Numbered from the stretch's first letter, positions 4,104 through 31,502 are shown. The stretch is 64,000 bases of DNA from Amphiscolops sp. MND2022 (GCA_964187785.1 OZ076418.1:26784001-26848000); one strand, 5' to 3'. Notes: generated from the letters alone by a model not told the origin. Program-made: numbers and translations.

Positions 4104-4295
4104 GACACAATAGCCCAAACTCCCAGAGATACAATAGCCCAATCTCCCAGAGACACAGTAGCCCAATCTCCCACAGACACAGTAGCCCAATCTCCCACAG
4201 ACACAGTAGCCCAATCTCCCAGAGACACAGTTGCCCAATCTCCCAGAGACACAGTAGCCCAATCTCCCAGAGTCACAATAGCCCAATCTTCCAGA
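4104..4295. repeat. Minisatellite, 8 x 24 bp (GACACAGTAGCCCAATCTCCCAGA) in the leader of BEL element 1
   Basis: Directly visible head-to-tail units with 0-4 substitutions and no spacers. Confidence 0.95.
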
Positions 4296-4394
4296 GACAC
4301 GAAATCAGAGACTCCAAGACCCAGTTCTTGGGCAATCTTCTGTTGTCTACCAACGAGTCGTCTTCTTCTAGTCCGGGTCGTCCACCAACGAGTC

Positions 4395-8900: not shown

Positions 8901-9540
8901 TAAAATCCAAGTTCCCGCAAATACACTGCAAAACTTTTTTGTTGAATGTTTCAATGATTTTGAAACTAGTTTTTCTTAGTTCCCAGCATTCGGATGCAAA
9001 AAGTACCGACGCTGTTATATTTGTTCGGTAGAGATGGGCTTTACTTTGGGTACAAATGATCGGGGACGTACTTCTTCTTAGCAGAAAGAAAGATTTTGCT
9101 GCCTTCCCAACTCTAACTTTGACGTGCTCGGTCCAGTTTAGTGATTCGTCTATCATCAGGCCGACGTCACGAACAAGGCTTTTGTGGTTTAAACTTCGAC
9201 CCTTCATATTGAAACAAACTTCTTCGAGAGTGTTCTTATTTCTGCCGAACTGAAATTCGCTGATTGAACAACGTTTGTTCAATTGTTTAGTGGGCGGTAT
9301 CTGTATGACTTTGCTACCCATATTGACTTTCGTGTTTATCATCGAACCTTAAGAACTCAAGCCATTAGTTTGATTAAATGTAACTACCACTCACTGGCTC
9401 ATCAAAAATCCCTTTTCTCCAGAGCTGCTGAAATGATCAATTTTCTTTACAGACATAAAGTCATTATTGGGCTGGATACTATGAATTTCAAGCTGTTAAA
9501 AAACAGCAGTTAGAAAACAGCAATATTTGATGCTAAAAAA
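5960..9540 (+). mobile_element. Decayed non-LTR retrotransposon (CR1/L2-like) ORF2: APE endonuclease plus RT, interrupted by a second LINE
   Basis: APE motifs ITEAW, VLGDFNFP, GNNLD; RT motifs QFGFQ, YEKAFDKVP, GVPQGSVLGP, FADDLK; the RT C-terminus resumes near 9300 (SGRYLYDF...FSRAAEMIN). Confidence 0.85.
8452..9300 (-). mobile_element. 5'-truncated LINE (RT C-terminal region) inserted in the opposite orientation into the first LINE
   Basis: ORF 8473-9342 with VRDVGLMIDESLNWTEHV, typical of the CR1/L2 RT C-terminus; (TAA)n tail seen as ttattattattatt at about 8455-8470. Confidence 0.8.
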
Positions 9541-10661
9541 TTTCTGTTCTGATCTTGTTTGCTCTCATTACATATGTTGTGCTTGCAACTCTTGTAAGTT
9601 TATTAAGAGTGTCAGTTGAAATTTTGTTTTCTCGGAATGGGAATTAAGTCTTTCTCTCTCTACAAGACTTGAAAATAGAAAATGAGCAGTGCCGTCAACA
9701 GTTTTACAATGAGGACACATCGATTTTTACAGTTATTCATTTCTGAAGAATACTTTCGCTGGTGACTTCCCAAAGCTCCAAATATCCATAGCTCCGAAAA
9801 CAAAATCGAGTGCCATTACTCCAAAAATTAATTCTAGTTGACAAAATAAACAAATCAAGCAAATTGGGCTAGTGGCTTGAATGAGTAGTTTGTTGGTAGT
9901 TTTTTTGATACTGGTCTACTGAGATAGAGGTTGGTATGGGGTTTCCTACTTTCGTTGCAGACCACGGGTGTGTGTCTTCTCCCCTAACATGATGACACAC
10001 AACGCGTTTGGTTGATGACGAAGATCCATGGTATCTGATAGAGAAAGAAAGAAAATCAAGCAAAGAATGAAAGTTCAACTGGTGCTCTCGTTCCGCTCCG
10101 CCCCACAATTTGAAAATCCTAAAATGGCTCTTTATTTTCAAATGTGGTCCGTTGAAGCGGCGGATTCCCAAAGCGTCGAAATTTTGCAAGCTATTCATCG
10201 CGCCGAAAAATAAATATTGAACGCTTCTGATTGGTTGAAAATTGAAATAGGAAAGAATTAAATTTGTAGAATTTGTGTGCTACACAGCATCGAACTAATT
10301 ATGATAACGTAGTCAGCTATGTTCACATACTCCTAGTGCCAAAAATGCAGGAGCGGAGCAAATCGGAGCTACGTGCCAATGGCCATGCCTCAATGTTGCT
10401 ACTTGGCGAAGGGAGCGAAGCGACCGAGCCATACAACGAATATGCTAACCTTTTCGAATAATAACCTGAAAATAGTCGCTGATCTGGAGTTTTTCGACGC
10501 GATGAATACCTAACTTTAATTTCGACGCTCTGAATACTTTTGTTTAATTTCGACTCAATTAATAGCCTCCCGTTGATGCCGCCTGTCTCTAATGATTTAC
10601 TGGAAAGCTGTTTCATTTGTTTGTAAATCAAAGTAATTGAATTCAACTGGAGTGAATTCAG

Positions 10662-10760
10662 TTTTAATTTCGGAGCTGTGGCACTAGATTTTAATTTTGG
10701 AGCTATGGCACTGTGTTTTATTTCAGATATCGAACTGAATTTCTAATTCGGAGCTATGAA
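10662..10760. repeat. Short degenerate tandem repeat, about 28 bp x 3-4 (TTTTAATTTCGGAGCTRTGGCACT)
   Basis: Recurrent ttcggagct/ttggagct core at about 28-bp spacing. Confidence 0.6.
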
Positions 10761-10790
10761 TAGTCTCCGCTGTGAATAGTCACAATTTTC

Positions 10791-10929
10791 CCTATTACAA
10801 ATCCTGCATTAGAACACATTGCGTTTTAACGGCCGCTTGCCTCGGATATAGGGCTAAGATATTCATGATGATATTTCTCACTTTTAGCCCTGAATAGGAG
10901 TTAGCGGGCGTTTTGTTTAAAAATAAAGT
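10791..10929. repeat. Copy of a dispersed repeat of about 140 bp, also found at 30365-30383 plus 31252-31376
   Basis: cctattacaaatcctgcattagaacacattgc...ttagccctgaata shared with 31271-31376; gttagcggg..tgtttaaaaataaagt shared with 30365/31252. Confidence 0.8.
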
Positions 10930-11005
10930 GAGGCATCATCTGGCTCAGCTCTAATAGTTTCAGTTCTGTTGGTCTAATTGGAGTCTGGTCTTCTCACTAA
11001 CATGG

Positions 11006-12847
11006 TGTCTGAAATGGATATTTGGCTATTTCTCGGGACCCAGAAATCGGATTGGCATCAAACTTAGCAGGGAAACAGATAAGTTATGCATGATTCAGCG
11101 CCCCTAAAACTTTCACTTTTTATCGGGACTTAGACTATCCGACGGGCATCCGAAGTTAACCCTATCTTAATACATGGGGTTTTCCCACTCTCCACACTAA
11201 AAATCGTCCCCCAGAAAAACTCAAGGAGCAAACCTCCTGGTTTTTTGGCCGTATAACTTTTGGACTTCACACTCTACTAATTCACAGTACTTTGGAACCC
11301 TTGCTGTTATTGGATGGAATTTTATGACAATAACAAAAATGAAGTTACTCACTGAATTGACGTGATAGGAACCGTTTCTCCTATTATTTGCAAACCGAGA
11401 GTTTATCCAGGCTTCTCTGGCTAGCCAATCGGTCTCTGTACCATTAATCACGTACGAAATCATCGATGTAGTCGCTGTACCCATTCTGTCTGACATTGTC
11501 AGGACGCAATGGGCTAATCCCCAAGGCAAGATTATACTGTCGCCGGTCTTCTGGATCGCCCAGTGAATATGTTTCAATCGCTCTCCGCCGCCCTCAAGCA
11601 GCTTCAACAGATCCACTAGGCGTCCACTGTCACGGCGAAGCTCACGGGCTAGCTCCGTGTGAGTGCACACCAGTCACAACTTCCATCCGGAGATGACTGT
11701 TGTAACTGATGGGAATGCTGGATCGAAGTCGACGTGCCACAGCGTCCATGATCGTCCAACAGCCACGAACAGGCATTCCTCATGCAAGTCGCAGTCTTGG
11801 TGCTCTTTAACCCTCGTTACGGCCCACGATGTTCCATTATCCACTGCGTTACACCAAATCTTCTCGTAGCAGTGCTCAAAGTGAGTAGCACCAAATTCTT
11901 TGCATTTCTTGACTTTCACGACTCTTGATCGACTCTTTTACGTAAAGTGGCTTCATTGCCAGAACATTTGGCCAAGAGTCTACCCCAGTTTTTGTCTACC
12001 AATCTAATAAGTGGCTCACGAACAAGTTTGGGAATTGGCAGATCGGGAGTATCAGGCAGCTCGCCTTTATTAATTTCCTTCATTGGTGTCACCAAATTGA
12101 CGCAAGTGATCAATGACACTATGTGATCGGCGAGATTATTGGCATCAATCTGGAAAACAAAACAGTGCATACATCTTCATATCAACTTGGAAATCAATCA
12201 TAGACATCAGGAATTCCAGAAAACATCAAAGAGACCAAACTCCTGGATTGAAACATGACGGAAATGATCCATTTGATGTATTCCTGTCTTCATTGCGACT
12301 AATTTGCATCAGCAAGACGTTCGGTAGTGAATTTCGTCATTTTAGGCTTTTTCGACTATTTTGTGCGAAACAGCCATATCGTGACTTGAGCAGAAGAGGG
12401 TGTCGACAACGAAATTTTCACCAGCAATTATATAACATGTAAAAGTCATATTAGCGAAGACAGGCCTAAATTGAGTTTGTTTTAACACTTTTAAACTCTA
12501 CTAAAGACTATTACTACAAATTGAATGCATATTTGTCGAGATTGCGTATATTGGTAAACGTGCTTTTTTGCCGAATTCAAATCAGCCAATCAAATTGCGC
12601 CATTTGTCAGTACTGACATGCTTCATTTCTCCATTATATATGTTCAGTTTTTTGCTTTGTTTTGACTTCTTATAGTTGCTTTTCGCGCTATTTGTCTGAA
12701 AAATTTCACCGCTTTATATTAAAGGACCTGTTTTACCTCGAACATTTCGGAGGACAATCCATCGGTGGACCGCCATCGGACGACAATCAAGGACGTAAAT
12801 TACTTCTGCAACTGTTGTTAATCCTACGAAGAGTGTCGGTGCGTACA
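11006..12847 (+). repeat. LTR1 (complete 5' LTR, 1842 bp)
   Basis: TGTCTGAAATGG ... GCGTACA followed by TTT and the PBS; colinear with 27998-29852. Confidence 0.93.
11221..12149 (-). pseudogene. Antisense JmjC-domain ORF in LTR1 (frameshift near 11918, TGG>TGA at 11674-11676)
   Basis: SWTLWHVDFD...ISGWKL*LV...IQKTGDSIILPWGLAHCVLT: HxD...K...H JmjC signature. Confidence 0.85.
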
Positions 12848-12850
12848 TTT

Positions 12851-12868
12851 TGGTCCGCCGACCCGGAC
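12851..12868 (+). promoter_or_regulatory. Primer-binding site (tRNA-Tyr-like), repeated after LTR2 and LTR3
   Basis: TGGTCCGCCGACCCGGAC, identical to the PBS of BEL element 1. Confidence 0.85.
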
Positions 12869-12921
12869 ACACTAAAATTCTTCAGTACTCCACTTCAAAT
12901 CGACAAGTTACTCACAAGAAA

Positions 12922-15900
12922 ATGACTACTGAAAAAGCAACAAAGGACATCATGAAGCTGAAGCGAGTGCACGGTGGACACAAGGCGGCTTTTACCCGTC
13001 TGACAACAAGTGTTGAAGATCTTCTCAGAGCTTCAATTGAAGATGATGAAAAGCTATGTGAAGCTGAAGGACTTTTGACCAGCTTAAACAGAAAAATGCT
13101 AGACATTTACAGATGGGATACAGACATTCAGCTGGAAAGAGAAGGCGAGGCTAAATTAGAAGACGATACAGAAGCTTCAACAACATTCGACGTCTCCTCT
13201 GGTATCACAATTGCTCGTCTAACTGCACTAAGTCACAATTACAAGAAACGAACTGCAGCACGAACAATTTCATTACACGAAGTAGTTCTTCTCCATCAAG
13301 TACAAGTAGCCTTAAACTACCCTAGCTACAATTACCCAGTTTCAGTGGTTTATATACAGAATGGAATTCCTTCAGAGATCTCTTCAACGCATCAGGAGAC
13401 TCCAACACACAGCTCAGTAACTCAGAGAAATTGAATTACTTGCGTGCCTGCGTCAAAGGTGATGCAGCAAAATTATTCAGCTCGCTCACCATCACAGATG
13501 CTAATTACAGTATCGCCGAGCGTTTGCTGACTGAAAGGTATGAAAATAAGCGTAGTATTGTTAACGCTCATCACAAAACCATCTGGTCCCAACCTTCTAT
13601 CAAGACAGAATCAGGAAGTGCGCTAAGAAAATTGTTAGAAACTACCAATGAAAATTTGTGAGCACTCCAAGAGCAGGTTCAAGGTACCGAGTATTGGGAC
13701 CCTCTTTTAGTCTTCTGGTTATGCGACTAGATGGACCCGGAATCCAGAAAGCAGTGGGAATTGGATAATACCGCTGGTACGGAGCTATTAACATGGAAAC
13801 AGCTGTCAAAGTTCCTTGACACTAGAAGTAGAGCACTTGAAACCAGCAGAACCAAGATGGTATCCAATACCAATCAATCACAGCCACCTCGTGAAAAGCG
13901 AGTTCAATTCTATACTGATTCAACAGTGTGTAGCCAAAATTGCACTGAAGAACACAAACTTCATGCTTGTCCCCAATTCAAGCAAATGTCAATTCCAGAT
14001 AGATATAACTGCGTGAAGACCAATCGGGCATGCTTCAGTTGTCTCCAATCTGGTCACAGCGCTTCCAAATGCCCATCCAAGTTTACTTGTCGCGAATGCA
14101 AACAAAGACATCGTACACTTCTACGCCGAACCCTCAAAGGCAATCAGGATAAAAAAGAAAATGCAGCAGGATTATTCAGTAATCTTCCAGACACAGCTTC
14201 AGAAGATACTTCAGAACTTGAGTAGACAGCAGATCAAGTTACATCGGGACATTGCAATGCCAGTGTACCAATCAACAATGTGTTGTTATCTAATGCTCTC
14301 GTATCAATCAAAGACTACTGGCAAGACTGTGAAGCTTCGAGCATTGCTTGATTTGGGTTCTCAAGCCAGTTTCATTACGGAAAAAAAGGCAGCAGCTCTG
14401 ATGCTCAAAGTGAAAAGAAGTCAAGTCGCAATCACCACTTTGGGAGCATCAGCTACTGAAAAGACGAAAGTGATATTAGCAACGAAGCTTAACAACACTG
14501 TGCCTGTTAATCTTCACGTCATCCCGAAAATAACAAATCAAGTGCCCACGAGTAAAGTCGATGTCTCTCAATTGCATCATATTCGCAATCTGAAACTTGC
14601 TGATCCAGCATTCAATACACCTGGAAAAAATGATGTACTACTTGGAGCTGATGTTCTCGAGGATGTGATGATGGAAGCCAAACTCAAGGATGGTGGTCTA
14701 TCAGTTCGTGACTCGATCTTCGGTTGGGTAGTGTCAGGCCCAGTGAAACCTCTTCAAGGAATGTGTATCACCTCTCATCATATTGCATTTGAACCCAACC
14801 ACGATACTGATCAATTGCTGTCTCGTCTATCGGAATTGGAGAATATGCCTGAGAAAAGACATATATCTTCAGAAGAAAAACGATGTGAAGAGCATTTTGA
14901 TCGCACTACCAAAAGAAAGGATGACGGACGTTTCATTGTGGAAATGCCCTTCAAGGAAGACTGTTCACAGCTTGGGCACAGCAAAACCTTAGCTATGCGG
15001 CGCTTTCTAAACCTTGAACGAAAGCTAATTCGTGACCAGTCCCTCCATGAACGTTACTCTGCATTCATCAAGGTATTCATCGACATGGGTCATCTCGAAA
15101 AGGTACCCATTTATGAACTGGAATTATCTCGCAATTGCTACCTTCCTCATCACTGTGTCACGAAGGAAAGCAGTTCAACAACAAAACTTCGAGTTGTCTT
15201 TGACGCTAGCGCAAAAACCACAAGCGGACTGTCTCTTAAAGATTGTTTGCTATTGGGGCCGAAATTGCAAGCTGACTTATTTCACATTCTAATACGATTT
15301 CGCTTCTTCAAGGTGGCAATGTCTGCTGACGTTGCTAAGATGTACAGGCAAGTGGAGCTATGCCCAAGGGATAAAGATTTACATAGACTTTTATGGCGAT
15401 TCCATCAAACAGAGTCAATTGGCACGTACAGAATGACACGAGTAACGTACGGCGTGGCTAGCTCTTCATACCACTCTATTTGCAGCCTCATGGAGAGTGC
15501 GCCAATTTTGAAGACACGCAGGAGTCTGTGCGTGATGCACTCACAAGGGACTTCTATGTGGACGACATCCTGACTGGTGCTAGCTCGGAGACGGAAGCAG
15601 TGGAGCTGCAAGACTGACTCATCAAGACACTGAAGAAGGGCCAACTTGACTTGCGAACATGGACCTGTTATCTGCCAGAACTCGTATTGAGGCTTCCACC
15701 AGAAAACCGTGAAGCGAATGAAGAATTCAAGTTTCGTGATGAGACACACACCATCAAGACGTTAGGCGTTGTCTGGAATCCTTCTAGCGACAAATTTACC
15801 TTCACAGTATCTCATCCTTCAAATGATCTCGATGAAGCAACCATCACTAAAAGAAAGATGTTAAGTGACATCGCCAAAATCTTCGATCCTCTCGGTTGGC

Positions 15901-16461
15901 TGTCACCTGTTTCACTAGAGCTAAAACACTTGTAGAACAGGTGTGGCAATGTCGAGTTGATTGGGATCAAAAACTTCCGACCGAATTAAAAACAGCCTAT
16001 CTTGATTGGAGAAGGAAACTCGAAGCCTTGAAGGACATTCAATTGCAAAGATTCTGCCTTCCAAGGAACAATCTGACAAAGTTGCACTACATGTATTCTG
16101 CGATGCATCAGAGAAAGGCTATGCTGCGTGCATCTACGTGGTAGCTGAAAATGATGATGGAGAAAGGACATCAAGGCTCCTAGCTGCCAAGTCTAGAGTG
16201 GCTCCCCTCAAAGTGCAATCAATACCTCGATTGGAGCTATGTGGTGCATTCTTGGGACAACGACTGCTCTCTTCAGTACTCCGAGAACTCTCCAAACTGA
16301 AGTTGGCAATTGTTCAGAGATTTGCCTGTTTTGCCTGGACCGATTCGACCATTGTATTGAGCTGGCTGAAGCAGGAACCCAATCACTGAACAACGTTTGC
16401 TACAAATCGAGTGGCGGAAATCCAGCAGGATAGCGAATTATACTGGCGACATGTCCCAACG
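12922..16461 (+). pseudogene. gag-pol copy 1 (gag, PR, RT, RNase H), truncated at the duplication junction
   Basis: NYLRACVKGDA (DUF1759-like), CFSCLQSGHSASKC, RALLDLGSQASFI, YLPHHCV...[40 protein letters not shown]; several frameshifts. Confidence 0.92.
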
Positions 16462-18210
16462 TTATGCCTGATTCAGCGCCCCTAAAACTTTCACTTTTTA
16501 TCGGGACTTAGACTATCCGACGGGCATCCGAAGTTAACCCTATCTTAATACATGGGGTTTTCCCACTCTCCACACTAAAAATCGTCCCCCAGAAAAACTC
16601 AAGGAGCAAACCTCCTGGTTTTTTGGCCGTATAACTTTTGGACTTCACACTCTACTAATTCACAGTACTTTGGAACCCTTGCTGTTATTGGATGGAATTT
16701 TATGACAATAACAAAAATGAAGTTACTCACTGAATTGACGTGATAGGAACCGTTTCTCCTATTATTTGCAAACCGAGAGTTTATCCAGGCTTCTCTGGCT
16801 AGCCAATCGGTCTCTGTACCATTAATCACGTACGAAATCATCGATGTAGTCGCTGTACCCATTCTGTCTGACATTGTCAGGACGCAATGGGCTAATCCCC
16901 AAGGCAAGATTATACTGTCGCCGGTCTTCTGGATCGCCCAGTGAATATGTTTCAATCGCTCTCCGCCGCCCTCAAGCAGCTTCAACAGATCCACTAGGCG
17001 TCCACTGTCACGGCGAAGCTCACGGGCTAGCTCCGTGTGGGTGCACACCAGTCACAACTTCCATCCGGAGATGACTGTTGTAACTGATGGGAATGCTGGA
17101 TCGAAGTCGACGTGCCACAGCGTCCATGATCGTCCAACAGCCACGAACAGGCATGCCTCATGCAAGTCGCAGTCTTGGTGCTCTTTAACCCTCGTTACGG
17201 CCCACGATGTTCCATTATCCACTGCGTTACACCAAATCTTCTCGTAGCAGTGCTCAAAGTGAGTAGCACCAAATTCTTTGCATTTCTTGACTTTCACGAC
17301 TCTTGATCGACTCTTTTACGTAAAGTGGCTTCATTGCCAGAACATTTGGCCAAGAGTCTACCCAGTTTTTGTCTACCAATCTAATAAGTGGCTCACGAAC
17401 AAGTTGGGGAATTGGCAGATCGGGAGTATCAGGCAGCTCGCCTTTATTAATTTCCTTCATTGGTGTCACCAAATTGACGCAAGTGATCAATGACACTATG
17501 TGATCGGCGAGATTATTGGCATCAATCTGGAAAACAAAACAGTGCATACATCTTCATATCAACTTGGAAATCAATCATAGACATCAGGAATTCCAGAAAA
17601 CATCAAAGAGACCAAACTCCTGGATCGAAACATGACGGAAATGATCCATTTGATGTATTCCTGTCTTCATTGCGACTAATTTGCATCAGCAAGACGTTCG
17701 GTAGTGAATCTCGTCATTTTAGGCTTTTTCGACTATTTTGTGTGAAACAGCCATATCGTGACTTGAGCAGAAGAGGGTGTCGACAACGAAATTTTCACCA
17801 GCAATTATATAACATGTAAAAGTCATATTAGCGAAGACAGGCCTAAATTGAGTTTGTTTTAACACTTTTAAACTCTACTAAAGTCTATTACTACAAATTG
17901 AATGCATATTTGTCGAGATTGCGTATATTGGTAAACGTGCTTTTTTGCCGAATTCAAATCAGCCAATCAAATTGCGCCATTTGTCAGTACTGACATGCTT
18001 CATTTCTCCATTATATATGTTCAGTTTTTTGCTTTGTTTTGACTTCTTATAGTTGCTTTTCGCGCTATTTGTCTGAAAAATTTCACCGCTTTATATTAAA
18101 GGACCTGTTTTACCTCGAACATTTCGAGTGGTCCGCCATCGGACGACAATCAAGGACGTAAATCACTTCTGCAACTGTTGTTAATCCTACGAAGAGTGTC
18201 GGTGCGTACA
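16462..18210 (+). repeat. LTR2 (lacks the first 78 bp)
   Basis: Starts at ttatgc, equivalent to 11084; ends GCGTACA plus PBS; near-identical to LTR1. Confidence 0.93.
16599..17526 (-). pseudogene. Antisense JmjC-domain ORF in LTR2
   Basis: Same peptide as in LTR1 with the same stop and frameshift plus one extra 1-bp deletion. Confidence 0.85.
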
Positions 18211-18284
18211 TTTTGGTCCGCCGACCCGGACACACTAAAATTCTTCAGTACTCCACTTCAAATCGACAAGTTACTCACAAGAAA

Positions 18285-20829
18285 ATGACTACTGAAAAAG
18301 CAACAATGGACATCATGAAGCTGAAGCGAGTGCACGGTGGACACAAGGCGGCTTTTACCCGTCTGACAACAAGTGTTGAAGATCTTCTCAGAGCTTCAAT
18401 TGAAGATGATGAAAAGCTATGTGAAGCTGAAGGACTTTTGACCAGCTTAAACAGAAAAATGCTAGACATTTACAGATGGGATACAGAAATTCAGCTGGAA
18501 AGAGAAGGCGAGGCTAAATTAGAAGCCGATACAGAAGCTTCAACAACATTCGACGTCTCCTCTGGTATCACAATTGCTCGTCTAACTGCACTAAGTCACA
18601 ATTACAAGAAACGAACTACAGCACGAACAATTTCATTACACGAAGTAGTTCTTCTCCATCAAGTACAAGTAGCCTTAAACTACCCTAGCTACAATTACCC
18701 AGTTTCAGTGGTTTATATACAGAATGGAATTCCTTTAGAGATCTCTTCAACGCATCAGGAGACTCCAACACACAGCTCAGTAACTCAGAGAAATTGAATT
18801 ACTTGCGTGCCTGCGTCAAAGGTGATGCAGCAAAATTATTCAGCTCGCTCACCATCACAGATGCTAATTACAGTATCGCCGAGCGTTTGCTGACTGGAAG
18901 GTATGAAAATAAGCGTAGTATTGTTAACGCTCATCACAAAACCATCTGGTCCCAACCTTCTATCAAGACAGAATCAGGAAGTGCGCTAAGAAAATTGTTA
19001 GAAACTACCAATGAAAATTTGTGAGCACTCCAAGAGCAGGTTCAAGGTACCGAGTATTGGGACCCTCTTTTAGTCTTCTGGTTATGCGACTAGATGGACC
19101 CGGAATCCAGAAAGCAGTGGGAATTGGATAATACCGCTGGTACGGAGCTATTAACATGGAAACAGCTGTCAAAGTTCCTTGACACTAGAAGTAGAGCACT
19201 TGAAACCAGCAGAACCAAGATGGTATCCAATGTCAATCAATCACAGCCACCTCGTGAAAAGCGAGTTCAATTCTATACTGATTCAACAGTGTGTAGCCAA
19301 AATTGCACTGAAGAACACAAACTTCATGCTTGTCCCCAATTCAAGCAAATGTCAATTCCAGATAGATATAACTGCGTGAAGACCAATCGGGCATGCTTCA
19401 GTTGTCTCCAATCTGGTCACAGCGCTTCCAAATGCCCATCCAAGTTTACTTGTCGCGAATGCAAACAAAGACATCGTACACTTCTACGCCGAACCCTCAA
19501 AGGCAATCAGGATAAAAAAGAAAATGCAGCAGGATTATTCAGTAATCTTCCAGACACAGCTTCAGAAGATACTTCAGAACTTGAGTAGACAGCAGATCAA
19601 GTTACATCGGGACATTGCAATGCCAGTGTACCAATCAACAATGTGTTGTTATCTAATGCTCTCGTATCAATCAAAGACTACTGGCAAGACTGTGAAGCTT
19701 CGAGCATTGCTTGATTTGGGTTCTCAAGCCAGTTTCATTACGGAAAAAAAGGCAGCAGCTCTGATGCTCAAAGTGAAAAGAAGTCAAGTCGCAATCACCA
19801 CTTTGGGAGCATCAGCTACTGAAAAGACGAAAGTGATATTAGCAACGAAGCTTAACAACACTGTGCCTGTTAATCTTCACGTCATCCCGAAAATAACAAA
19901 TCAAGTGCCCACGAGTAATGTCGATGTCTCTCAATTGCATCATATTCGCAATCTGAAACTTGCTGATCCAGCATTCAATACACCTGGATAAAATGATGTA
20001 CTACTTGGAGCTGATGTTCTCGAGGATGTGATGATGGAAGCCAAACTCAAGGATGGTGGTCTATCAGTTCGTGACTCGATCTTCGGTTGGGTAGTGTCAG
20101 GCCCAGTGAAACCTCTTCAAGGAATGTGTATCACCTCTCATCATATTGCATTTGAACCCAACCACGATACTGATCAATTGCTGTCTCGTCTATCGGAATT
20201 GGAGAATGTGCCTGAGAAAAGACATATATCTTCAGAAGAAAAACGATGTGAAGAGCATTTTGATCGCACTACCAAAAGAAAGGATGACGGACGTTTCATT
20301 GTGGAAATGCCCTTCAAGGAAGACTGTTCACAGCTTGGGCACAGCAAAACCTTAGCTATGCGGGGCTTTCTAAACCTTGAACGAAAGCTAATTCGTGACC
20401 AGTCCCTCCATGAACGTTACTCTGCATTCATCAAGGTATTCATCGACATGGGTCATCTCGAAAAGGTACCCATTTATGAACTGGAATTATCTCGCAATTG
20501 CTACCTTCCTCATCACTGTGTCACGAAGGAAAGCAGTTCAACAACAAAACTTCGAGTTGTCTTTGACGCTAGCGCAAAAACCACAAGCGGACTGTCTCTT
20601 AAAGATTGTTTGCTAGTGGGGCCGAAATTGCAAGCTGACTTATTTCACATTCTAATACGATTTCGCTTCTTCAAGGTGGCAATGTCTGCTGACGTTGCTA
20701 AGATGTACAGGCAAGTGGAGCTATGCCCAAGGGATAAAGATTTACATAGACTTTTATGGCGATTCCATCAAACAGAGTCAATCGGAAATCCAGCAGGATA
20801 GCGAATTATACTGGCGACATGTCCCAACG
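18285..20829 (+). pseudogene. gag-pol copy 2, jumping from mid-RT (20782) to the RNase H tail (20783-20829)
   Basis: Junction gagtcaat|cggaaatcc joins positions equivalent to 15419 and 16415 of copy 1. Confidence 0.92.
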
Positions 20830-22578
20830 TTATGCCTGATTCAGCGCCCCTAAAACTTTCACTTTTTATCGGGACTTAGACTATCCGACGGGCATCCGAA
20901 GTTAACCCTATCTTAATACATGGGGTTTTCCCACTCTCCACACTAAAAATCGTCCCCCAGAAAAACTCAAGGAGCAAACCTCCTGGTTTTTTGGCCGTAT
21001 AACTTTTGGACTTCACACTCTACTAATTCACAGTACTTTGGAACCCTTGCTGTTATTGGATGGAATTTTATGACAATAACAAAAATGAAGTTACTCACTG
21101 AATTGACGTGATAGGAACCGTTTCTCCTATTATTTGCAAACCGAGAGTTTATCCAGGCTTCTCTGGCTAGCCAATCGGTCTCTGTACCATTAATCACGTA
21201 CGAAATCATCGATGTAGTCGCTGTACCCATTCTGTCTGACATTGTCAGGACGCAATGGGCTAATCCCCAAGGCAAGATTATACTGTCGCCGGTCTTCTGG
21301 ATCGCCCAGTGAATATGTTTCAATCGCTCTCCGCCGCCCTCAAGCAGCTTCAACAGATCCACTAGGCGTCCACTGTCACGGCGAAGCTCACGGGCTAGCT
21401 CCGTGTGGGTGCACACCAGTCACAACTTCCATCCGGAGATGACTGTTGTAACTGATGGGAATGCTGGATCGAAGTCGACGTGCCACAGCGTCCATGATCG
21501 TCCAACAGCCACGAACAGGCATGCCTCATGCAAGTCGCAGTCTTGGTGCTCTTTAACCCTCGTTACGGCCCACGATGTTCCATTATCCACTGCGTTACAC
21601 CAAATCTTCTCGTAGCAGTGCTCAAAGTGAGTAGCACCAAATTCTTTGCATTTCTTGACTTTCACGACTCTTGATCGACTCTTTTACGTAAAGTGGCTTC
21701 ATTGCCAGAACATTTGGCCAAGAGTCTACCCAGTTTTTGTCTACCAATCTAATAAGTGGCTCACGAACAAGTTGGGGAATTGGCAGATCGGGAGTATCAG
21801 GCAGCTCGCCTTTATTAATTTCCTTCATTGGTGTCACCAAATTGACGCAAGTGATCAATGACACTATGTGATCGGCGAGATTATTGGCATCAATCTGGAA
21901 AACAAAACAGTGCATACATCTTCATATCAACTTGGAAATCAATCATAGACATCAGGAATTCCAGAAAACATCAAAGAGACCAAACTCCTGGATCGAAACA
22001 TGACGGAAATGATCCATTTGATGTATTCTTGTCTTCATTGCGACTAATTTGCATCAGCAAGACGTTCGGTAGTGAATCTCGTCATTTTAGGCTTTTTCGA
22101 CTATTTTGTGTGAAACAGCCATATCGTGACTTGAGCAGAAGAGGGTGTCGACAACGAAATTTTCACCAGCAATTATATAACATGTAAAAGTCATATTAGC
22201 GAAGACAGGCCTAAATTGAGTTTGTTTTAACACTTTTAAACTCTACTAAAGTCTATTACTACAAATTGAATGCATATTTGTCGAGATTGCGTATATTGGT
22301 AAACGTGCTTTTTTGCCGAATTCAAATCAGCCAATCAAATTGCGCCATTTGTCAGTACTGACATGCTTCATTTCTCCATTATATATGTTCAGTTTTTTGC
22401 TTTGTTTTGACTTCTTATAGTTGCTTTTCGCGCTATTTGTCTGAAAAATTTCACCGCTTTATATTAAAGGACCTGTTTTACCTCGAACATTTCGAGTGGT
22501 CCGCCATCGGACGACAATCAAGGACGTAAATCACTTCTGCAACTGTTGTTAATCCTACGAAGAGTGTCGGTGCGTACA
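20830..22578 (+). repeat. LTR3 (lacks the first 78 bp)
   Basis: Offset 4368 from LTR2 and almost identical to it, same gtcccaacg|ttatgcc junction. Confidence 0.93.
20967..21894 (-). pseudogene. Antisense JmjC-domain ORF in LTR3
   Basis: Translated ORF pieces identical to those of LTR2. Confidence 0.85.
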
Positions 22579-22651
22579 TTTTGGTCCGCCGACCCGGACA
22601 CACTAAAATTCTTCAGTATTCACTTCAAATCGACAAGTTACTCACAAGAAA

Positions 22652-25600
22652 ATGACTACTGAAAAAGCAACAAAGGACATCATGAAGCTGAAGCGAGTGC
22701 ACGGTGGACACAAGGCGGCTTTTACCCGTCTGACAACAAGTGTTGAAGATCTTCTCAGAGCTTCAATTGAAGATGATGAAAAGCTATGTGAAGCTGAAGG
22801 ACTTTTGACCAGCTTAAACAGAAAAATGCTAGACATTTACAGATGGGATACAGAAATTCAGCTGGAAAGAGAAGGCGAGGCTAAATTAGAAGCCGATACA
22901 GAAGCTTCAACAACATTCGACGTCTCCTCTGGTATCACAATTGCTCGTCTAACTGCACTAAGTCACAATTACAAGAAACGAACTACAGCACGAACAATTT
23001 CATTACACGAAGTAGTTCTTCTCCATCAAGTACAAGTAGCCTTAAACTACCCTAGCTATAATTACCCAGTTTCAGTGGTTTATATACAGAATGGAATTCC
23101 TTTAGAGATCTCTTCAACGCATCAGGAGACTCCAACACACAGCTCAGTAACTCAGAGAAATTGAATTACTTGCGTGCCTGCGTCAAAGGTGATGCAGCAA
23201 AATTATTCAGCTCGCTCACCATCACAGATGCTAATTACAGTATCGCCGAGCGTTTGCTGACTGGAAGGTATGAAAATAAGCGTAGTATTGTTAACGCTCA
23301 TCACAAAACCATCTGGTCCCAACCTTCTATCAAGACAGAATCAGGAAGTGCGCTAAGAAAATTGTTAGAAACTACCAATGAAAATTTGTGAGCACTCCAA
23401 GAGCAGGTTCAAGGTACCGAGTATTGGGACCCTCTTTTAGTCTTCTGGTTATGCGACTAGATGGACCCGGAATCCAGAAAGCAGTGGGAATTGGATAATA
23501 CCGCTGGTACGGAGCTATTAACATGGAAACAGCTGTCAAAGTTCCTTGACACTAGAAGTAGAGCACTTGAAACCAGCAGAACCAAGATGGTATCCAATAC
23601 CAATCAATCACAGCCACCTCGTGAAAAGCGAGTTCAATTCTATACTGATTCAACAGTGTGTAGCCAAAATTGCACTGAAGAACACAAACTTCATGCTTGT
23701 CCCCAATTCAAGCAAATGTCAATTCCAGATAGATATAACTGCGTGAAGACCAATCGGGCATGCTTCAGTTGTCTCCAATCTGGTCACAGCGCTTCCAAAT
23801 GCCCATCCAAGTTTACTTGTCGCGAATGCAAACAAAGACATCGTACACTTCTACGCCGAACCCTCAAAGGCAATCAGGATAAAAAAGAAAATGCAGCAGG
23901 ATTATTCAGTAATCTTCCAGACACAGCTTCAGAAGATACTTCAGAACTTGAGTAGACAGCAGATCAAGTTACATCGGGACATTGCAATGCCAGTGTACCA
24001 ATCAACAATGTGTTGTTATCTAATGCTCTCGTATCAATCAAAGACTACTGGCAAGACTGTGAAGCTTCGAGCATTGCTTGATTTGGGTTCTCAAGCCAGT
24101 TTCATTACGGAAAAAAAGGCAGCAGCTCTGATGCTCAAAGTGAAAAGAAGTCAAGTCGCAATCACCACTTTGGGAGCATCAGCTACTGAAAAGACGAAAG
24201 TGATATTAGCAACGAAGCTTAACAACACTGTGCCTGTTAATCTTCACGTCATCCCGAAAATAACAAATCAAGTGCCCACGAGTAATGTCGATGTCTCTCA
24301 ATTGCATCATATTCGCAATCTGAAACTTGCTGATCCAGCATTCAATACACCTGGATAAAATGATGTACTACTTGGAGCTGATGTTCTCGAGGATGTGATG
24401 ATGGAAGCCAAACTCAAGGATGGTGGCCTATCAGTTCGTGACTCGATCTTCGGTTGGGTAGTGTCAGGCCCAGTGAAACCTCTTCAAGGAATGTGTATCA
24501 CCTCTCATCATATTGCATTTGAACCCAACCACGATACTGATCAATTGCTGTCTCGTCTATCGGAATTGGAGAATGTGCCTGAGAAAAGACATATATCTTC
24601 AGAAGAAAAACGATGTGAAGAGCATTTTGATCGCACTACCAAAAGAAAGGATGACGGACGTTTCATTGTGGAAATGCCCTTCAAGGAAGACTGTTCACAG
24701 CTTGGGCACAGCAAAACCTTAGCTATGCGGGGCTTTCTAAACCTTGAACGAAAGCTAATTCGTGACCAGTCCCTCCATGAACGTTACTCTGCATTCATCA
24801 AGGTATTCATCGACATGGGTCATCTCGAAAAGGTACCCATTTATGAACTGGAATTATCTCGCAATTGCTACCTTCCTCATCACTGTGTCACGAAGGAAAG
24901 CAGTTCAACAACAAAACTTCGAGTTGTCTTTGACGCTAGCGCAAAAACCACAAGCGGACTGTCTCTTAAAGATTGTTTGCTAGTGGGGCCGAAATTGCAA
25001 GCTGACTTATTTCACATTCTAATACGATTTCGCTTCTTCAAGGTGGCAATGTCTGCTGACGTTGCTAAGATGTACAGGCAAGTGGAGCTATGCCCAAGGG
25101 ATAAAGATTTACATAGACTTTTATGGCGATTCCATCAAACAGAGTCAATTGGCACGTACAGAATGACACGAGTAACGTACGGCGTGGCTAGCTCTTCATA
25201 CCACTCTATTTGCAGCCTCATGGAGAGTGCGCCAATTTTGAAGACACGCAGGAGTCTGTGCGTGATGCACTCACAAGGGACTTCTATGTGGACGACATCC
25301 TGACTGGTGCTAGCTCGGAGACGGAAGCAGTGGAGCTGCAAGACTGACTCATCAAGACACTGAAGAAGGGCCAACTTGACTTGCGAACATGGACCTGTTA
25401 TCTGCCAGAACTCGTATTGAGGCTTCCACCAGAAAACCGTGAAGCGAATGAAGAATTCAAGTTTCGTGATGAGACACACACCATCAAGACGTTAGGCGTT
25501 GTCTGGAATCCTTCTAGCGACAAATTTACCTTCACAGTATCTCATCCTTCAAATGATCTCGATGAAGCAACCATCACTAAAAGAAAGATGTTAAGTGACA

Positions 25601-27888
25601 TCGCCAAAATCTTCGATCCTCTCGGTTGGCTGTCACCTGTTTCACTAGAGCTAAAACACTTGTAGAACAGGTGTGGCAATGTCGAGTTGATTGGGATCAA
25701 AAACTTCCGACCGAATTAAAAACAGCCTATCTTGATTGGAGAAGGAAACTCGAAGCCTTGAAGGACATTCAATTGCAAAGATTCTGCCTTCCAAGGAACA
25801 ATCTGACAAAGTTGCACTACATGTATTCTGCGATGCATCAGAGAAAGGCTATGCTGCGTGCATCTACGTGGTAGCTGAAAATGATGATGCAGAAAGGACA
25901 TCAAGGCTCCTAGCTGCCAAGTCTAGAGTGGCTCCCCTCAAAGTGCAATCAATACCTCGATTGGAGCTATGTGGTGCATTCTTGGGACAACGACTGCTCT
26001 CTTCAGTACTCCGAGGACTCTCCAAACTGAAGTTGGCAATTGTTCAGAGATTTGCCTGTTTTGCCTGGACCGATTCGACCATTGTATTGAGCTGGCTGAA
26101 GCAGGAACCCAATCACTGGACAACGTTTGCTACAAATCGAGTGGCGGAAATCCAGCAGGATAGCGAATTATACTGGCGACATGTACCAACGCATGAGAAT
26201 CCAGCTGATATAGCATCTCGTGGGCTCAACCCGTCTCTTTTGGCAGAAAACGAGCTTTGGTGGTCTGGCCCCAAATGGCTCAAATTTGGACAAATTCCAG
26301 AGCCCTATCATTCATTGGAAACGAAGGAAGAATGCAAGAAGACAGCACCCTCCACACAACTTCTTCTAGCAAGGACTACTTCTGAGGGAATTTCGTCTGA
26401 AGGAGTCATCGACTTATCAAAACAGAATTCATTGATGAAGGCCATTCGAATTGTTGCCTTCATTCGGAGGTTCATCAATCGCCTGAGGAAGAATCTCAAT
26501 CAATTGCCCATGTACATCACAAGGGAAGAATCATCAGAAGCTCTCAAGATTCTCCTTCGACTAGAGCAACAGAAATTTTTTGAAGAGGAAATTAGAACAC
26601 TCGAAAAGGATGTTCAAGTGAGAAAGACTAGCAGACTTGTCAAATTATACCCTTTTCTTCATGAAGGCGTCTTGTGCGTGGGAGGACGATTAATTCACGC
26701 CACCCTGGCAGATGAAGCAAAATATCCAAGAATCGTTCCCGCCGAAAGTGATCTGGCAGAGTTAATTATCAAAAACTCTCACAGAATCACCCTACATGGG
26801 GGCACTTACCAAGTCATCGCCCACATTAGACAGCATTTTTGGATCCCTGCATTCAGGAATCTCGTCCGGAATACAATCATGAATTGTACTACATGTTCAC
26901 GATTAACATCCAAACCTTGTTATCCTCTTATGGGGGATCTCCCAAAGCAACGAGTGGACATTCCCAATCGGGCGTTTCAAGATGTAGGCTTGGTTTTTGC
27001 TGGACCTTTTTTGTGCAAGGGTCCTAATTGCACTTCAACCACAGCCTATTTGGCCATTTTTACATGCTTTGCAAGCCGTGCTGTACATCTAGAAGCTGTA
27101 TCCGATTTAACAGCACAAGCATGCATTGCTGCCTTGAGACGCTTTATGTCCCGACGAGGCGGTCCTGACACAATATACTCTGACAATGGGAGTAACTTTG
27201 TTGGAGCTCAAGCTGAGATCAAAACATTGCAACATTTGCTCCAGAGCGAACATGAGAATTCTCTACAAGCAACAGCTGCCGGATTGCAAATAAAGTGGTC
27301 TTTCATTCCCCTCGAGCGCCACACTTTGGAGGACTTTGGGCGGCAGCAGTGAAGAGTGCAAAGAAACATCTGCGTCGAACAATGGGTAATAATGTGCTCA
27401 ACTTCGAAGAACTTTCCACACTATTCTGCCACATCGAAAGTGTACTTAATTCCAGACCTTTTGGAACAATCTCAGAAGATCCAAAGGAGGAAACTCCGAT
27501 AACGCCTGCAGATTTGTGTAGTGGTGGAAAGTTGGATCTAATCCCTTCACAAAGTTGAAGCACGCCATCAAATATAGAAGATTGCTCCCCCATGAAACGT
27601 TGGTCATTCACACAAAATTTACTACATGGGTTCTGGAAACGGTGGTCTAAGGAATATGTGTCATCTCTTCAAGAACGAGGAAAATGGACATCGGGGAAGG
27701 AAAATCTTAAACTCGGGGATATTGTATATATTACAGACGACAATACACCGCCCTTGCAATGGCCCATAGGACGAGTAATACATCTTTACAGTGGACCTGA
27801 CAGATTCGTCCGTGTTGTTAAGATCAAAACAACAACTGGAATTTACAATCATGCAGTCCACAAATCACAAAGGATTCCATTAGCTTGA
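22652..27888 (+). pseudogene. gag-pol copy 3, full length (gag, PR, RT, RNase H, integrase, DUF5641-like C-terminus) but frameshifted
   Basis: All motifs of copy 1 plus the integrase HHCC region (HRITLHGG...CTTC), [32 protein letters not shown] and FWKRWSKEY. Confidence 0.93.
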
Positions 27889-27980
27889 TGCTAATCTATT
27901 GAAATTCGAATGTTGGGCCGTATACCGTATACACTTATAGCAGATAGTCTAACCCTGTAAATTATTATTCACCAATCTTC

Positions 27981-27997
27981 AAGACAGGCGGGCGGTA
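27981..27997 (+). promoter_or_regulatory. Polypurine tract
   Basis: AAGACAGGCGGGCGGTA immediately before the TGT of LTR4. Confidence 0.8.
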
Positions 27998-29852
27998 TGT
28001 CTAAAATGGATATTTGGCTATTTCTCGGGACCCAGCAATCGGATTGGCACCAAATTTGGCAGGGAAACAGATAATTTTATGCCTGATTCAGCGCCTTTGA
28101 AACCCTTACCTTTTATTGTGATTTAGACTATCCGACGGGCATCCGAAGTTATACCCTAACTTAATACATGGGGTTTTCCCACTCTCCACAATAAAAATCG
28201 TCCCCCAGAAAAACTCAAGGAGCAAACCTCCTGGTTTTTTTGGCCGTATAACTTTTGGACTTCACACTCTACTTATGCACAGTACTTTGGAATCCTTCCT
28301 GTTATTGGATGGAATTTGATGACAATAACAAAAATGAAGTTACTCACTACTCAATTGACCTGATAGGAACTCTTTCCCGTATTATTTGCAAACCGAGAGT
28401 TTATCCAGGCTTCTCTGGCTAGCCTCTTGGTCTCTGTACCATTAATCACGTACGAAATCATCGATGTAGTCGCTGTACCCATTCTGTCTGACATTGTCAG
28501 AACGCAATGGGCTAATCCCCAAGGCAAGATTATACTGTCGCCGGTCTTCTGGATCGCCCAGTGAATTTGTTTTTGTCGCTCTCCGCCGCCCTCAAGCAGC
28601 TTCAACAGATCCACTAGGCGTCCACTGTCACGGCAAAGCTCACGGGCTAGCTCCGTTTGGGTGCACACCAGCCACAACTTCCATCCGGAGATGACTGTTG
28701 TAACTGATGGGGATGCTGGATCGAAGTCGACGTGCCACAGCGTCCATGATCGTCCAACAGCCACAAACAGGCATGCCTCATGCAAATCGCAGTCTTGGTT
28801 CTCTTTACCCCTCGTTACGGCCCACGATGTTCCATCATCCACTGCGTTACACCAGTTCTTCTCGTAGCAGTGCTAAAAGCGAGTAGCACCAAATCCTTTG
28901 CATTTCTTGACTTTCATGTACTCTTGATCGACTCTTTTAAGTAAAGTGGCTTCATTGCCAAAAAATTTGGCCAAGAATCTACCCCAGTTTTTGCCCAATT
29001 TGGGGAATGGACAGATCGGGAGTATCAGGCAGCTCGCCTTTATTAATTTCCTTAGTTGGTGTCAGCAAATTGCCGCAAGTGATCAATGACACTATGTGAT
29101 CGACGAGATTATTGACATCCATCTGGAAAACAAAACAGTGCAAACATCGTCATATCAACTGGGAAATCAATCATAGACATCAGGAATTCCAAAAAACATC
29201 AAAGAGACCAAACTCCTGGCAATGACCATTTTTCATCAAATGGCAATTTCAATGACCAATGCTGGTTCGAAACATCACGGAAATGAACCATTTATTGTAT
29301 TCCTGTATTCATTGCGACTAATTTGCATCAGCAAGACGTTCGATAGTGAATTTCATCATTTTCGACATTTTCGACTAGTTTGTGTGAAACAGCCAAATCG
29401 TGACTTGAGCAGAAGAGGGTGTTGACAACGAAACTTTCACCAGCAATTATATAACATGTAAAAGTCATATTAGTGAAGACAGGCCTAAGTTGAGTTTGTT
29501 TTATCTTTTTTAAACTCTACTAAAGACTATTACTATAAATTGAATGCATATTTGTCGAGTTAGCGTATATTGGTAAAAGTGCTTTTTTGCCGAATTCAAA
29601 TCAGCCAATCAAATTGCGCCATTTGTCAGTACTGACATGCTTCATTTCTCCATTATATTTGTTCAGTTTTTTGCATTGTTTTGACTTCTTATAGTTGCTT
29701 TTCGCGCTATTTGTCTGAAGAAATTCACCGCTTTATATTAAAGCACCTATTTTACCTCGAACATTTCGAGTGGTCCGCCATCGGACGACAGTCAAGGACG
29801 TAAATTACTTCTGCAAATGTTGTTAATCCTACGAAGAGTGTCGGCGCGTTCA
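27998..29852 (+). repeat. LTR4 (complete 3' LTR, 1855 bp), clearly more diverged from LTR1-3 than they are from each other
   Basis: TGTCTAAAATGG ... GCGTTCA followed by the TSD; many substitutions and several indels relative to LTR1. Confidence 0.93.
28351..29122 (-). pseudogene. Antisense JmjC-domain ORF in LTR4; the catalytic core is uninterrupted (ORF 28351-28842)
   Basis: CLFVAVGRSWTLWHVDFDPASPSVTTVISGWKLWLV...IHWAIQKTGDSIILPWGLAHCVLT in one frame; His 28732-28734, Asp 28726-28728, Lys 28678-28680, His 28507-28509; an upstream TAG and a deletion of about 26 bp disrupt the N-terminal part. Confidence 0.9.
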
Positions 29853-30383
29853 CATGGCACCAATTTAGAAACGATTTATGTCATCTGAAAAGTGACTAAA
29901 TGAAATGACCGGCTAACGCACAAACAACTCGCCTGTTTTCACAAATTGGCTGGTTAACTAGACTTTCATCGGTCTTTGACTTTTGAGCTCCTTAATGAAG
30001 TTCATTCTGTTTTGCTGGTACACGACTTAAACTATACCAAACCTCCACTCCAAACAACACACTGAAATCTCAGTTGCATATCCTCCAAAAGTATTGATGC
30101 ACCAAGTGGGACATTACCCTACCCGCCGTAGTCAGTCTTTACCGATCTGTCATGCAAACCCAAGTTTTACATGGAGCACCAATATGGGCACAAAAGAATA
30201 TCAAATCTACAACTTCCAAAACAGTATCGTGAGATCGATGTTCAAGAACTGTTTATCGCCACCTATTAGTTCAGCTGACGCTCTCATCGGGATCCCAACA
30301 AATGACCTTTTCTGCATGAGGCCTTGATTTTCTTGGTTACATTTTTAGCGGAAAATGTGCCGGTGTTAGCGGGTGTCTTGTTT

Positions 30384-31251: not shown

Positions 31252-31502
31252 TGTTTAAAAATAAAGTTTACCTATTACAAATCCTGCATTAGAACACATT
31301 GCCTTTTAACGGACGCTTGCCTAGGATATAGGGCTAAGATTTTCAAAATGATATTTCTTACCTTTAGCCCTGAATAACTTGAGTGCATGAGGCCTTGATT
31401 TACTTGTTGTCATAAATGCTGAAGAATTTGAAGAGTTTTAAAATGCTTTGGATTTCAGATTTTGGTTTGAAAAACTTTCTCGAAAATGTAGTGGATTGAA
31501 GA

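Follow-up and report, generated by a model that had tools for sequence, protein, structure and literature searches.

We describe here an antisense gene carried by a family of BEL/Pao retrotransposons, one copy of which occupies positions 11006-29852 of a 64,000-nucleotide stretch of the Amphiscolops sp. MND2022 genome (GCA_964187785.1, OZ076418.1:26784001-26848000; hereafter the window, with positions counted from its first letter). The copy in the window is an old, internally triplicated and dead element. The long terminal repeat (LTR) of the family carries a complete antisense accessory gene, predicted to encode a minimal JmjC-fold Fe(II)/2-oxoglutarate (2OG) oxygenase of ~265 aa with a KDM2/KDM7-like core. 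Our data demonstrate that the location of the gene inside the LTR is a feature of the BEL/Pao family and not of the window copy alone, so that a full element carries two copies. More importantly, the gene is kept intact in young elements, is under strong purifying selection while a lineage is active, and decays neutrally after insertion. From the sequences, we give an even chance to the reading that the product is a KDM2/7-like demethylase encoded by the element, or at minimum an anti-silencing factor of JmjC type, and would oppose silencing of the element by host histone methylation.

A search with the open reading frame (ORF) found in the window revealed a small family of proteins of ~265 aa with 65-90% identity. 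The E values of these relatives (1e-107 to 1e-65) place the antisense ORF far beyond chance. The sequences come from ENA and TARA metagenome assemblies, from Logan runs and from one NCBI assembly (GCA_013332895.1), and we infer a metazoan origin of the carriers from the BEL/Pao carrier alone. One locus, L001, is a complete BEL/Pao element with LTRs of 1879 bp that are 99.3% identical, a 5-bp target-site duplication (TSD; AGTCT) and an uninterrupted polyprotein of 1652 aa, which contains the DUF1759, Peptidase_A17, Integrase_H2C2, rve and DUF5641 domains. The JmjC ORF of L001 lies wholly within each LTR, antisense to pol (10001-10798 and 17319-18116), and its primer-binding site (PBS) and polypurine tract (PPT) are the same as those of the window element. 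L002, on a TARA Oceans scaffold, is a second complete BEL/Pao element with the layout of L001, and its protein is only 67% identical. Intact 265-aa ORFs occupy both LTRs of L001 and L002 and are also present on several other contigs. Moreover, one cluster at 90% identity comprises 18 sequences on different contigs of one assembly, at least five of them full-length (265 aa) and the others listed as truncated; in the five full-length members listed, the catalytic residues are invariant. The initial annotation of the window had proposed that a gene placed in the LTR is copied twice per insertion. This holds for L001 and L002, but the window contains four LTR copies (LTR1 to LTR4), and the gene is broken in all of them.

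Beyond these relatives, a scan of JGI metagenomes with family patterns found none. A profile search of 1.84 billion representative proteins gave 41 matches in total, none of which is a canonical cellular lysine demethylase (KDM). The best listed of these 41 were short ORFs resembling those borne by transposable elements, together with two spurious repeat proteins, P0048 and P0053, which were discarded.

The relation to JmjC enzymes became visible through the family rather than through the window ORF. The direct Pfam scan of the ORF at 28351-28842, a check put forward in the initial annotation, gave no JmjC match, and proteins of the BEL clade remain below the Pfam JmjC cut-off (at most 18.2 bits versus a 24-bit threshold). 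A phmmer search of PDB with the window ORF was merely suggestive (E 0.33), and a 10-sequence profile did no better. Relatives recovered with the family profile at E values of 1e-14 to 6e-4 (P0030, P0033, P0040, P0043, P0046, P0049 and P0052) pass the gathering score of PF02373 with 24.6-31.1 bits. The family profile, which at this stage includes distant relatives, matches the PDB structures of Caenorhabditis elegans KDM7A (ceKDM7A; 5e-8), PHF8 (1.5e-5), KDM7A (6e-5), KDM2A (6e-5) and JMJD6 (0.04). An AlphaFold2 model of the intact protein P0002, built from a 33-sequence alignment, reached a predicted local distance difference test score (pLDDT) of 83.5 and a predicted template-modelling score (pTM) of 0.85; an earlier run on 7 close sequences was unusable (pLDDT 49). 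When this model was compared with PDB by Foldseek, 50/50 of the matches listed were JmjC oxygenases (probability 1.00), with template-modelling scores of up to 0.58 (PHF8 and PHF2); ceKDM7A, FIH, KDM2A, JMJD7, UTY, TYW5, JMJD6 and JMJD5 were also among them. A JmjC match therefore exists at the level of both profile and fold, and the family protein is predicted to adopt the double-stranded beta-helix fold. Against a viral structure library, the matches were confined to generic cupin/JmjC proteins of giant viruses and phages.

In a 17-sequence alignment, no variation is seen at H139, H214 or G155 and hardly any at D141 or K157, and T/S136 is found in 16/17 sequences; across 33 sequences, H139, H214 and D141 are each at least 90% conserved. 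The HxD...H triad, the Thr/Ser three residues before its first His (H-3), the Lys at H+18 and the HxVxT motif (H214-x-V216-x-T/S) are conserved across all clades, and T/S136, K157 and H214-x-V216-x-T/S align to the corresponding residues of KDM7 and PHF8. The spacings first read in the window ORF (Thr at H-3, Lys at H+18, distal His at H+75) proved correct, and the residues of the metal-binding triad are all present in that ORF. By these sequence features the protein belongs to the JmjC Fe(II)/2OG oxygenase superfamily, with catalysis predicted. The subfamily had been left open; the profiles lean towards a KDM2/KDM7-like catalytic core rather than a JMJD6-like one (E 0.04), and the fold search does not discriminate between them.

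The family extends beyond BEL/Pao. A tree of 33 relatives contains five clades, and the largest distant clade shows ~25% identity (hhalign between it and the BEL clade: probability 94.6%, E 7e-8). Carriers of this clade encode RVT_1, RT_RNaseH, Integrase_H2C2 and rve without Peptidase_A17, and are thus Ty3/gypsy-type elements. Elements L004-L006 carry the JmjC gene in their interior, in antisense orientation, in the interval that separates pol from the 3' LTR; the LTRs of L005 and L006 measure 443-453 bp, and those of L004 are not delimited. This internal position indicates that LTR residence is specific to the BEL/Pao lineage and that antisense orientation is the shared trait; placement within the LTR, as first noted in the window, is therefore not essential to the gene. 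For clades B, D and E, either the genomic surroundings of the gene give no information or no DNA is available. Sense ORFs also occupy the stretch from the antisense JmjC gene to the 3' LTR, in L005 at 6532-8736 (minus strand) and 8787-9122 (minus strand) and in L006 at 8203-8907 (minus strand). The 734-aa extra ORF of L005 has no Pfam match and might be an env-like or other accessory protein. In L012 (1063-1494, minus strand), a 1.8-kb contig of GCA_013332895.1, a clade-E JmjC ORF adjoins an ORF with weak similarity to a Tc3-type transposase helix-turn-helix, and some JmjC clades may travel with other transposon types.

The borders of the gene resemble those of an exon. In the BEL and the Ty3/gypsy clades, a pyrimidine tract with CAG or TAG lies 0-8 nt upstream of the JmjC ATG, and GTRAGT lies 0-2 nt downstream of the stop codon. 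These splice-like signals recur in nine independent loci whose silent sites are saturated; the loci with border motifs are L001 (10001-10798), L002 (7973-8770), L004-L007 and L009-L012, from nearly all clades. The fourth copy in the window has an acceptor-like ...TTTTCCAG before its ATG (29123-29130) and GTGAGT right after its stop codon (28345-28350). In L011, GTGAGT overlaps the last two codons, and the stop codon there could be intronic. A further block, TGATTGGTTGATT, which contains an inverted CCAAT box, is located in the U5-proximal LTR (L001, ~9600-9620) and is common to L001 and L002, two loci that are otherwise saturated at silent sites. The equivalents in LTR4 and LTR1 of the window, on the minus strand ~400 nt upstream of the ATG, read TGATTGGCTGATT, one substitution from TGATTGGTTGATT. 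This block may be part of a bidirectional or antisense promoter.

These signals suggest a model for expression in which an antisense RNA polymerase II transcript would carry the JmjC gene, a non-coding leader exon would be spliced onto the acceptor 0-8 nt before the ATG of a single coding exon, and the donor 0-2 nt past the stop would open an intron in the 3' untranslated region. Introns in antisense orientation are not removed from the sense genomic RNA and so can persist in a retroelement; those proposed here would survive passage through the genomic RNA of the element.

Selection on the gene was assessed at several time depths. Among five closer BEL-clade lineages, codon positions 1 and 2 are 0.68-0.85 identical and position 3 is 0.35-0.44 identical, with the outlier L008 lower at all positions. 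Nei-Gojobori estimates of synonymous divergence (dS) between lineages were saturated (proportion of synonymous differences, pS, 0.80-0.93) and were replaced by these codon-position identities and a maximum-likelihood codon model. The latter gave a ratio of nonsynonymous to synonymous divergence (omega, dN/dS) of 0.037 between BEL-clade lineages, which is approximate because silent sites are saturated. The Ty3/gypsy-borne clade gave an omega of 0.059. When the window copies were compared with the intact L001a gene, dN was 0.06, dS 0.45-0.50 and omega 0.13-0.14. The gene copies of LTR1 and LTR4, which have diverged only since integration, gave an omega of 1.22. The low omega between lineages and the value of ~1.2 after insertion fit a gene that is needed during transposition of the lineage and decays neutrally later. 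The prospect of a domain confined to one insertion, with dN/dS near 1 and no intact copy, had been raised with the first reading of the window; what we found was intact ORFs elsewhere and omega values of ~0.04 and 0.13-0.14.

These values bear directly on the idea that a host JmjC exon was transduced into the LTR together with its intron flanks and has no function for the element. An ORF bounded by splice-site-like sequences is what a captured exon would look like, and 4/4 window copies are dead. However, passive hitch-hiking is excluded by the contrast between an omega of 0.04-0.14 between lineages and 1.2 after insertion. The gene is also kept in elements with saturated silent sites and in a second superfamily, its ATG and stop coincide with exon-like borders in nearly all clades, and a close cellular donor was not found among the 1.84 billion representatives (41 matches). 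Passive capture is thus largely refuted by the selection evidence, and we regard it as scarcely credible.

The same contrast in omega disfavours a host function at the window locus, and with it the view that the family represents a host gene, domesticated or original, that sits inside LTR-derived sequence and serves the host. One locus is suggestive of such a gene: L010 (10001-10801) contains an intact family ORF of 266 aa, whose metal-binding Asp is replaced by Ala, and there is no Pao pol less than 10 kb away. The boundaries of L010 could not be fixed, since internal repeats supply many TSD candidates and LTR-like motifs are repeated upstream (8600, 8782 and 9145); the locus may represent a solo LTR or else a non-autonomous derivative. 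Against a host gene, multiple copies exist, and one assembly alone has many truncated ones; the gene is duplicated together with the LTR inside full elements flanked by TSDs, its divergence after insertion is neutral, and the same cassette is found inside Ty3/gypsy-type elements. On the basis of selection and copy number, we rejected a host gene as very improbable.

The remaining question is what a selected JmjC protein would do for the element. By homology to KDM7, PHF8 and KDM2, it would strip mono- and dimethyl groups from histone lysines (H3K9, H3K27, H4K20 or H3K36), and this demethylation would delay or reverse chromatin silencing of the element by the host, making the protein an anti-silencing factor. 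Several observations weigh against this proposal. Domain scans detected no reader or targeting module (PHD, CXXC, chromo, F-box or LRR) in any family member, and any significant domain score in these proteins comes from the JmjC/cupin core. In the absence of such modules and of a close cellular homologue, we refrain from classing the protein as an orthologue of KDM2 or KDM7. The 2OG-contacting Tyr of KDM2A/PHF8 is not conserved in the family alignments. The pockets of KDM2/7-type enzymes accept mono- and dimethylated lysine, not the trimethylated H3K9 (H3K9me3) typical of silencing guided by PIWI-interacting RNAs (piRNAs). In addition, the window JmjC copy is non-functional, and the splice sites and promoter are motif predictions only.

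In the Foldseek search, FIH, JMJD6, JMJD7 and TYW5 score almost equal to the demethylases, so that the fold does not separate the family from hydroxylases; this is a further difficulty for a demethylase. A selected, real enzyme may thus not be a histone demethylase at all, and may hydroxylate or demethylate a host restriction or RNA-processing factor, the element's own Gag or integrase, or a nucleic acid, like JMJD6, FIH, JMJD7 and TYW5. FIH, JMJD7, TYW5, JMJD6 and JMJD5 are among the top Foldseek matches, with E values similar to those of KDMs, and the missing histone-reader domain and the replaced Tyr of KDM2/7 fit such an enzyme as well. In contrast, the profiles prefer KDM7/PHF8/KDM2A over JMJD6 by 3-6 orders of magnitude, and HxVxT after the distal His, Thr at H-3 and Lys at H+18 fit the KDM2/7 pattern. 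A non-histone substrate seems to us unlikely, although it is the foremost of the alternatives.

It is also conceivable that the protein counters silencing without catalysis, by binding heterochromatin proteins, as proposed for Epe1 of fission yeast. Epe1 of Schizosaccharomyces pombe is a KDM2/7-type JmjC protein that opposes heterochromatin marked by H3K9 methylation (H3K9me), and its action has been reported to be partly non-enzymatic (PMC7192584); unlike the family gene, it is a much larger, single-copy host gene. In P0006, otherwise intact, the metal-binding Asp (Asp141) is replaced by Ala, which counts against a demethylase and would suit a non-catalytic factor. However, HxD...H, the 2OG-binding Lys and the Thr/Ser are kept in all five clades despite saturation of silent sites, as selection on catalysis predicts, and we consider a non-catalytic role improbable. 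The most far-reaching form of the demethylase hypothesis is that BEL/Pao and Ty3/gypsy-type elements of the same genomes share an ancient, spliced antisense cassette for an active histone lysine demethylase that erases silencing marks and has been exchanged between element lineages. We advance this version tentatively, at somewhat less than an even chance.

We then resolved the architecture of the window element, which comprises the following features.

11001-11005: 5' copy of the TSD, CATGG; an identical pentamer stands at 29853-29857.
11006-12847, plus strand: 5' LTR (LTR1), 1842 bp, with TGT...ACA ends and starting TGTCT; ~92% identical to 27998-29852 by self-BLAST.
11353-12149, minus strand: JmjC pseudogene copy 1 (in LTR1); tblastn with P0002 aligns aa 1-265 in two frames.
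12851-12866, plus strand: PBS-like TGGTCCGCCGACCCGG, 3 nt past the end of LTR1; also present next to the LTR of L001 and of L002.
13311-16461, plus strand: gag-protease-reverse transcriptase (RT) part of the Pao polyprotein, first unit copy, with frame breaks; aa 41-1087 of the L001 polyprotein align by tblastn (76-92% identity), with Pfam matches.
16461-18210, plus strand: second LTR copy (LTR2), without its first 77 nt and fused to integrase-derived sequence; self-BLAST and junction reading.
16731-17526, minus strand: JmjC pseudogene copy 2 (in LTR2); tblastn with P0002.
18674-20777, plus strand: polyprotein fragment of the second unit copy, with a ~1-kb deletion; tblastn aa 41-741, junction 20782/20783.
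20829-22578, plus strand: third LTR copy (LTR3), without its first 77 nt; self-BLAST and junction reading.
21099-21894, minus strand: JmjC pseudogene copy 3 (in LTR3); tblastn, lesions identical to those of copy 2.
23071-27885, plus strand: frame-broken third polyprotein copy, which includes the integrase and the C-terminal domain; tblastn aa 51-1652 in pieces.
27981-27997, plus strand: PPT-like purine-rich tract before the 3' LTR; the same GGCGGGCGGTA adjoins the LTR in L001.
27998-29852, plus strand: 3' LTR (LTR4), 1855 bp, starting TGTCT; self-BLAST and junction reading.
28351-29122, minus strand: JmjC pseudogene copy 4 (in LTR4); tblastn, with the catalytic part surviving as a 163-aa ORF at 28351-28842.
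29853-29857: 3' copy of the TSD, CATGG; junction reading.

The initial annotation had described a BEL/Pao element with a TSD, TGT/CA ends, PBS, PPT and an LTR of ~1.85 kb, and re-reading of the boundaries and matching of the Pao domains confirmed this description. The region is a single insertion with the TSD CATGG, LTRs of 1.84-1.86 kb, PBS and PPT, and it shows the direct LTRs with TG...CA ends, the 5-bp TSD (4-6 bp required) and the adjoining PBS and PPT of BEL/Pao elements. Peptidase_A17 (Pao) matches among the window ORFs at E 1.4e-25, and rve and Integrase_H2C2 also have Pfam matches; all three domains are matched by the ORF at 25736-27352 (plus strand). These ORFs are 84-92% identical to the polyprotein of L001, which aligns to the element in many frame-broken pieces (76-92% identity).

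Comparison of the window with itself revealed four LTR copies in the element, because a 5.4-kb segment is tandemly triplicated. The unit of 5378 bp consists of the LTR minus its first 77 nt and the gag-protease-RT region, and its copies lie at 11083-16460, 16461-20828 (the middle copy, with ~1 kb deleted) and 20829-26191. These copies are mutually 99.2-99.8% identical, and the outer LTRs are ~8% apart. LTR1-3 are >99% identical among themselves and ~92% identical to LTR4, indicating that the insertion is old and that the triplication arose recently, as a segmental duplication, unless it is an artefact of assembly. The triplication junctions join integrase-coding sequence to LTR position 78, and LTR2 and LTR3 are therefore truncated duplicates and not products of exchange between LTRs. 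With its polyprotein in many pieces, an internal triplication, ~8% divergence between LTR1 and LTR4 and broken JmjC copies, the element is neither intact nor autonomous.

Each of the four LTR copies holds remains of the whole 265-aa gene, as detected by tblastn with the intact P0002, and all 4/4 JmjC copies are pseudogenes. In copy 1, both the start (ATG to ATT) and the stop codon are lost, one nucleotide is deleted at nt 230, and codon 159 is a stop. Copy 2 has the ATT start, 1-nt deletions at nt 164 and nt 230, the stop at codon 159 and the lost stop codon. In copy 4, the ATG is retained, 26 nt are deleted at nt 128, and codon 92 is a stop; the 163-aa ORF on the minus strand of LTR4 contains WHVDFD, GWKLW and AHCVLT. 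The stop at codon 159 of LTR1-3 falls inside GWKL*LV; KLWLV is found only in LTR4 and PAFPS in LTR1-3. The minus-strand JmjC peptide first reported from the window thus corresponds to a real ORF at 28351-28842, but as quoted it mixes LTR1-3 (PAFPS) with LTR4 (KLWLV).

Other repeats surround the element. A 113-bp direct repeat (91% identity) at 10784-10896 and 31264-31376 brackets the insertion outside the TSD, and the BEL element may have inserted into a different repeat or between two copies of it. The sequence at 1853-2737 (minus strand) weakly resembles the gag region of the BEL/Pao polyprotein (25% identity) and may be the other BEL element mentioned in the initial annotation. Remnants of a long interspersed nuclear element lie at 6263-8232 (plus strand), with ORFs that match Exo_endo_phos_2 and RVT_1. 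Remnants of a Ty3/gypsy-type pol are found at 58028-60349 (minus strand; RT_RNaseH, Integrase_H2C2 and rve), and the GC skew at 58-62 kb is unusually strong (+0.27 to +0.33). The window also contains a perfect 367-bp tandem duplication (384-1120), an array of 8.5 copies of a 24-bp unit (4097-4300) and an array of 8.9 copies of an 80-bp unit with 86% matches (62517-63216). An Rfam search of the window gave no match.

The family protein resembles several known systems. KDM7/PHF8/PHF2 and KDM2 (JHDM1) are its best profile matches and share its predicted fold, the triad, Thr at H-3, Lys at H+18 and HxVxT. In contrast to these enzymes, it has only ~265 aa and lacks PHD, CXXC, F-box and LRR domains, and identity in structural alignments is 9-14%; its gene is encoded by a retrotransposon and multicopy, the Tyr that contacts 2OG has not been conserved, and the search of 1.84 billion representatives gave no close cellular homologue. 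VANC, from the VANDAL (Mutator-like) DNA transposons of Arabidopsis, is a sequence-specific DNA-binding anti-silencing protein (PMC5735166, PMC10398659). Like VANC, the JmjC gene is a transposon-carried accessory gene proposed to counter epigenetic silencing by the host; unlike VANC, which belongs to a plant DNA transposon and is not an oxygenase, it rides an animal-type LTR retrotransposon, and its role is putative. TET/JBP dioxygenase genes are carried by fungal DNA transposons, Kyakuja-Dileera-Zisupton and others (PMC12730594). They too are Fe(II)/2OG dioxygenase accessory genes in several transposon lineages, and TET/JBP can erase an epigenetic mark; they differ in acting on DNA bases and in riding fungal DNA transposons, whereas here a JmjC protein is found in LTR retrotransposons.

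Antisense genes in LTR elements have precedents. In plant Retand Ty3/gypsy elements, antisense ORFs between pol and the 3' LTR mostly encode TRP28, and JmjC is not among the proteins listed (PMC11963269). The antisense gene of L004-L006 occupies exactly this position. HBZ of human T-cell leukaemia virus type 1 (HTLV-1) is an antisense retroviral gene for a basic leucine zipper factor and has a spliced form, in which a leader exon is joined to the coding exon as the border signals imply for the JmjC gene. Unlike Retand and HBZ, the BEL/Pao lineage has the whole coding exon inside the LTR. In the full-text literature, coverage of which was incomplete so that an earlier description is possible, we found no report of an LTR retrotransposon, or of any other transposon, that encodes a JmjC protein or a histone demethylase, and within the same coverage no element-encoded counter-measure to silencing described for animal retrotransposons.

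Hosts silence retrotransposons largely via histone methylation, and the known element-encoded counter-measures are few, such as VANC in plant DNA transposons and TET/JBP in fungal DNA transposons. Because they fall below Pfam thresholds, ORFs of ~265 aa such as these would be missed in annotation or labelled as orphan host genes. A complete spliced gene inside the LTR would offer a retroelement a way to hold an intron-flanked accessory gene, at double dosage. Purifying selection only during the active life of a lineage, together with occurrence in two LTR superfamilies, makes counter-defence at the level of chromatin directly testable with natural intact genes. If the demethylase hypothesis is true, the family would be the first case of a chromatin eraser encoded by a retrotransposon, used as a counter-defence to silencing based on piRNAs or H3K9me.

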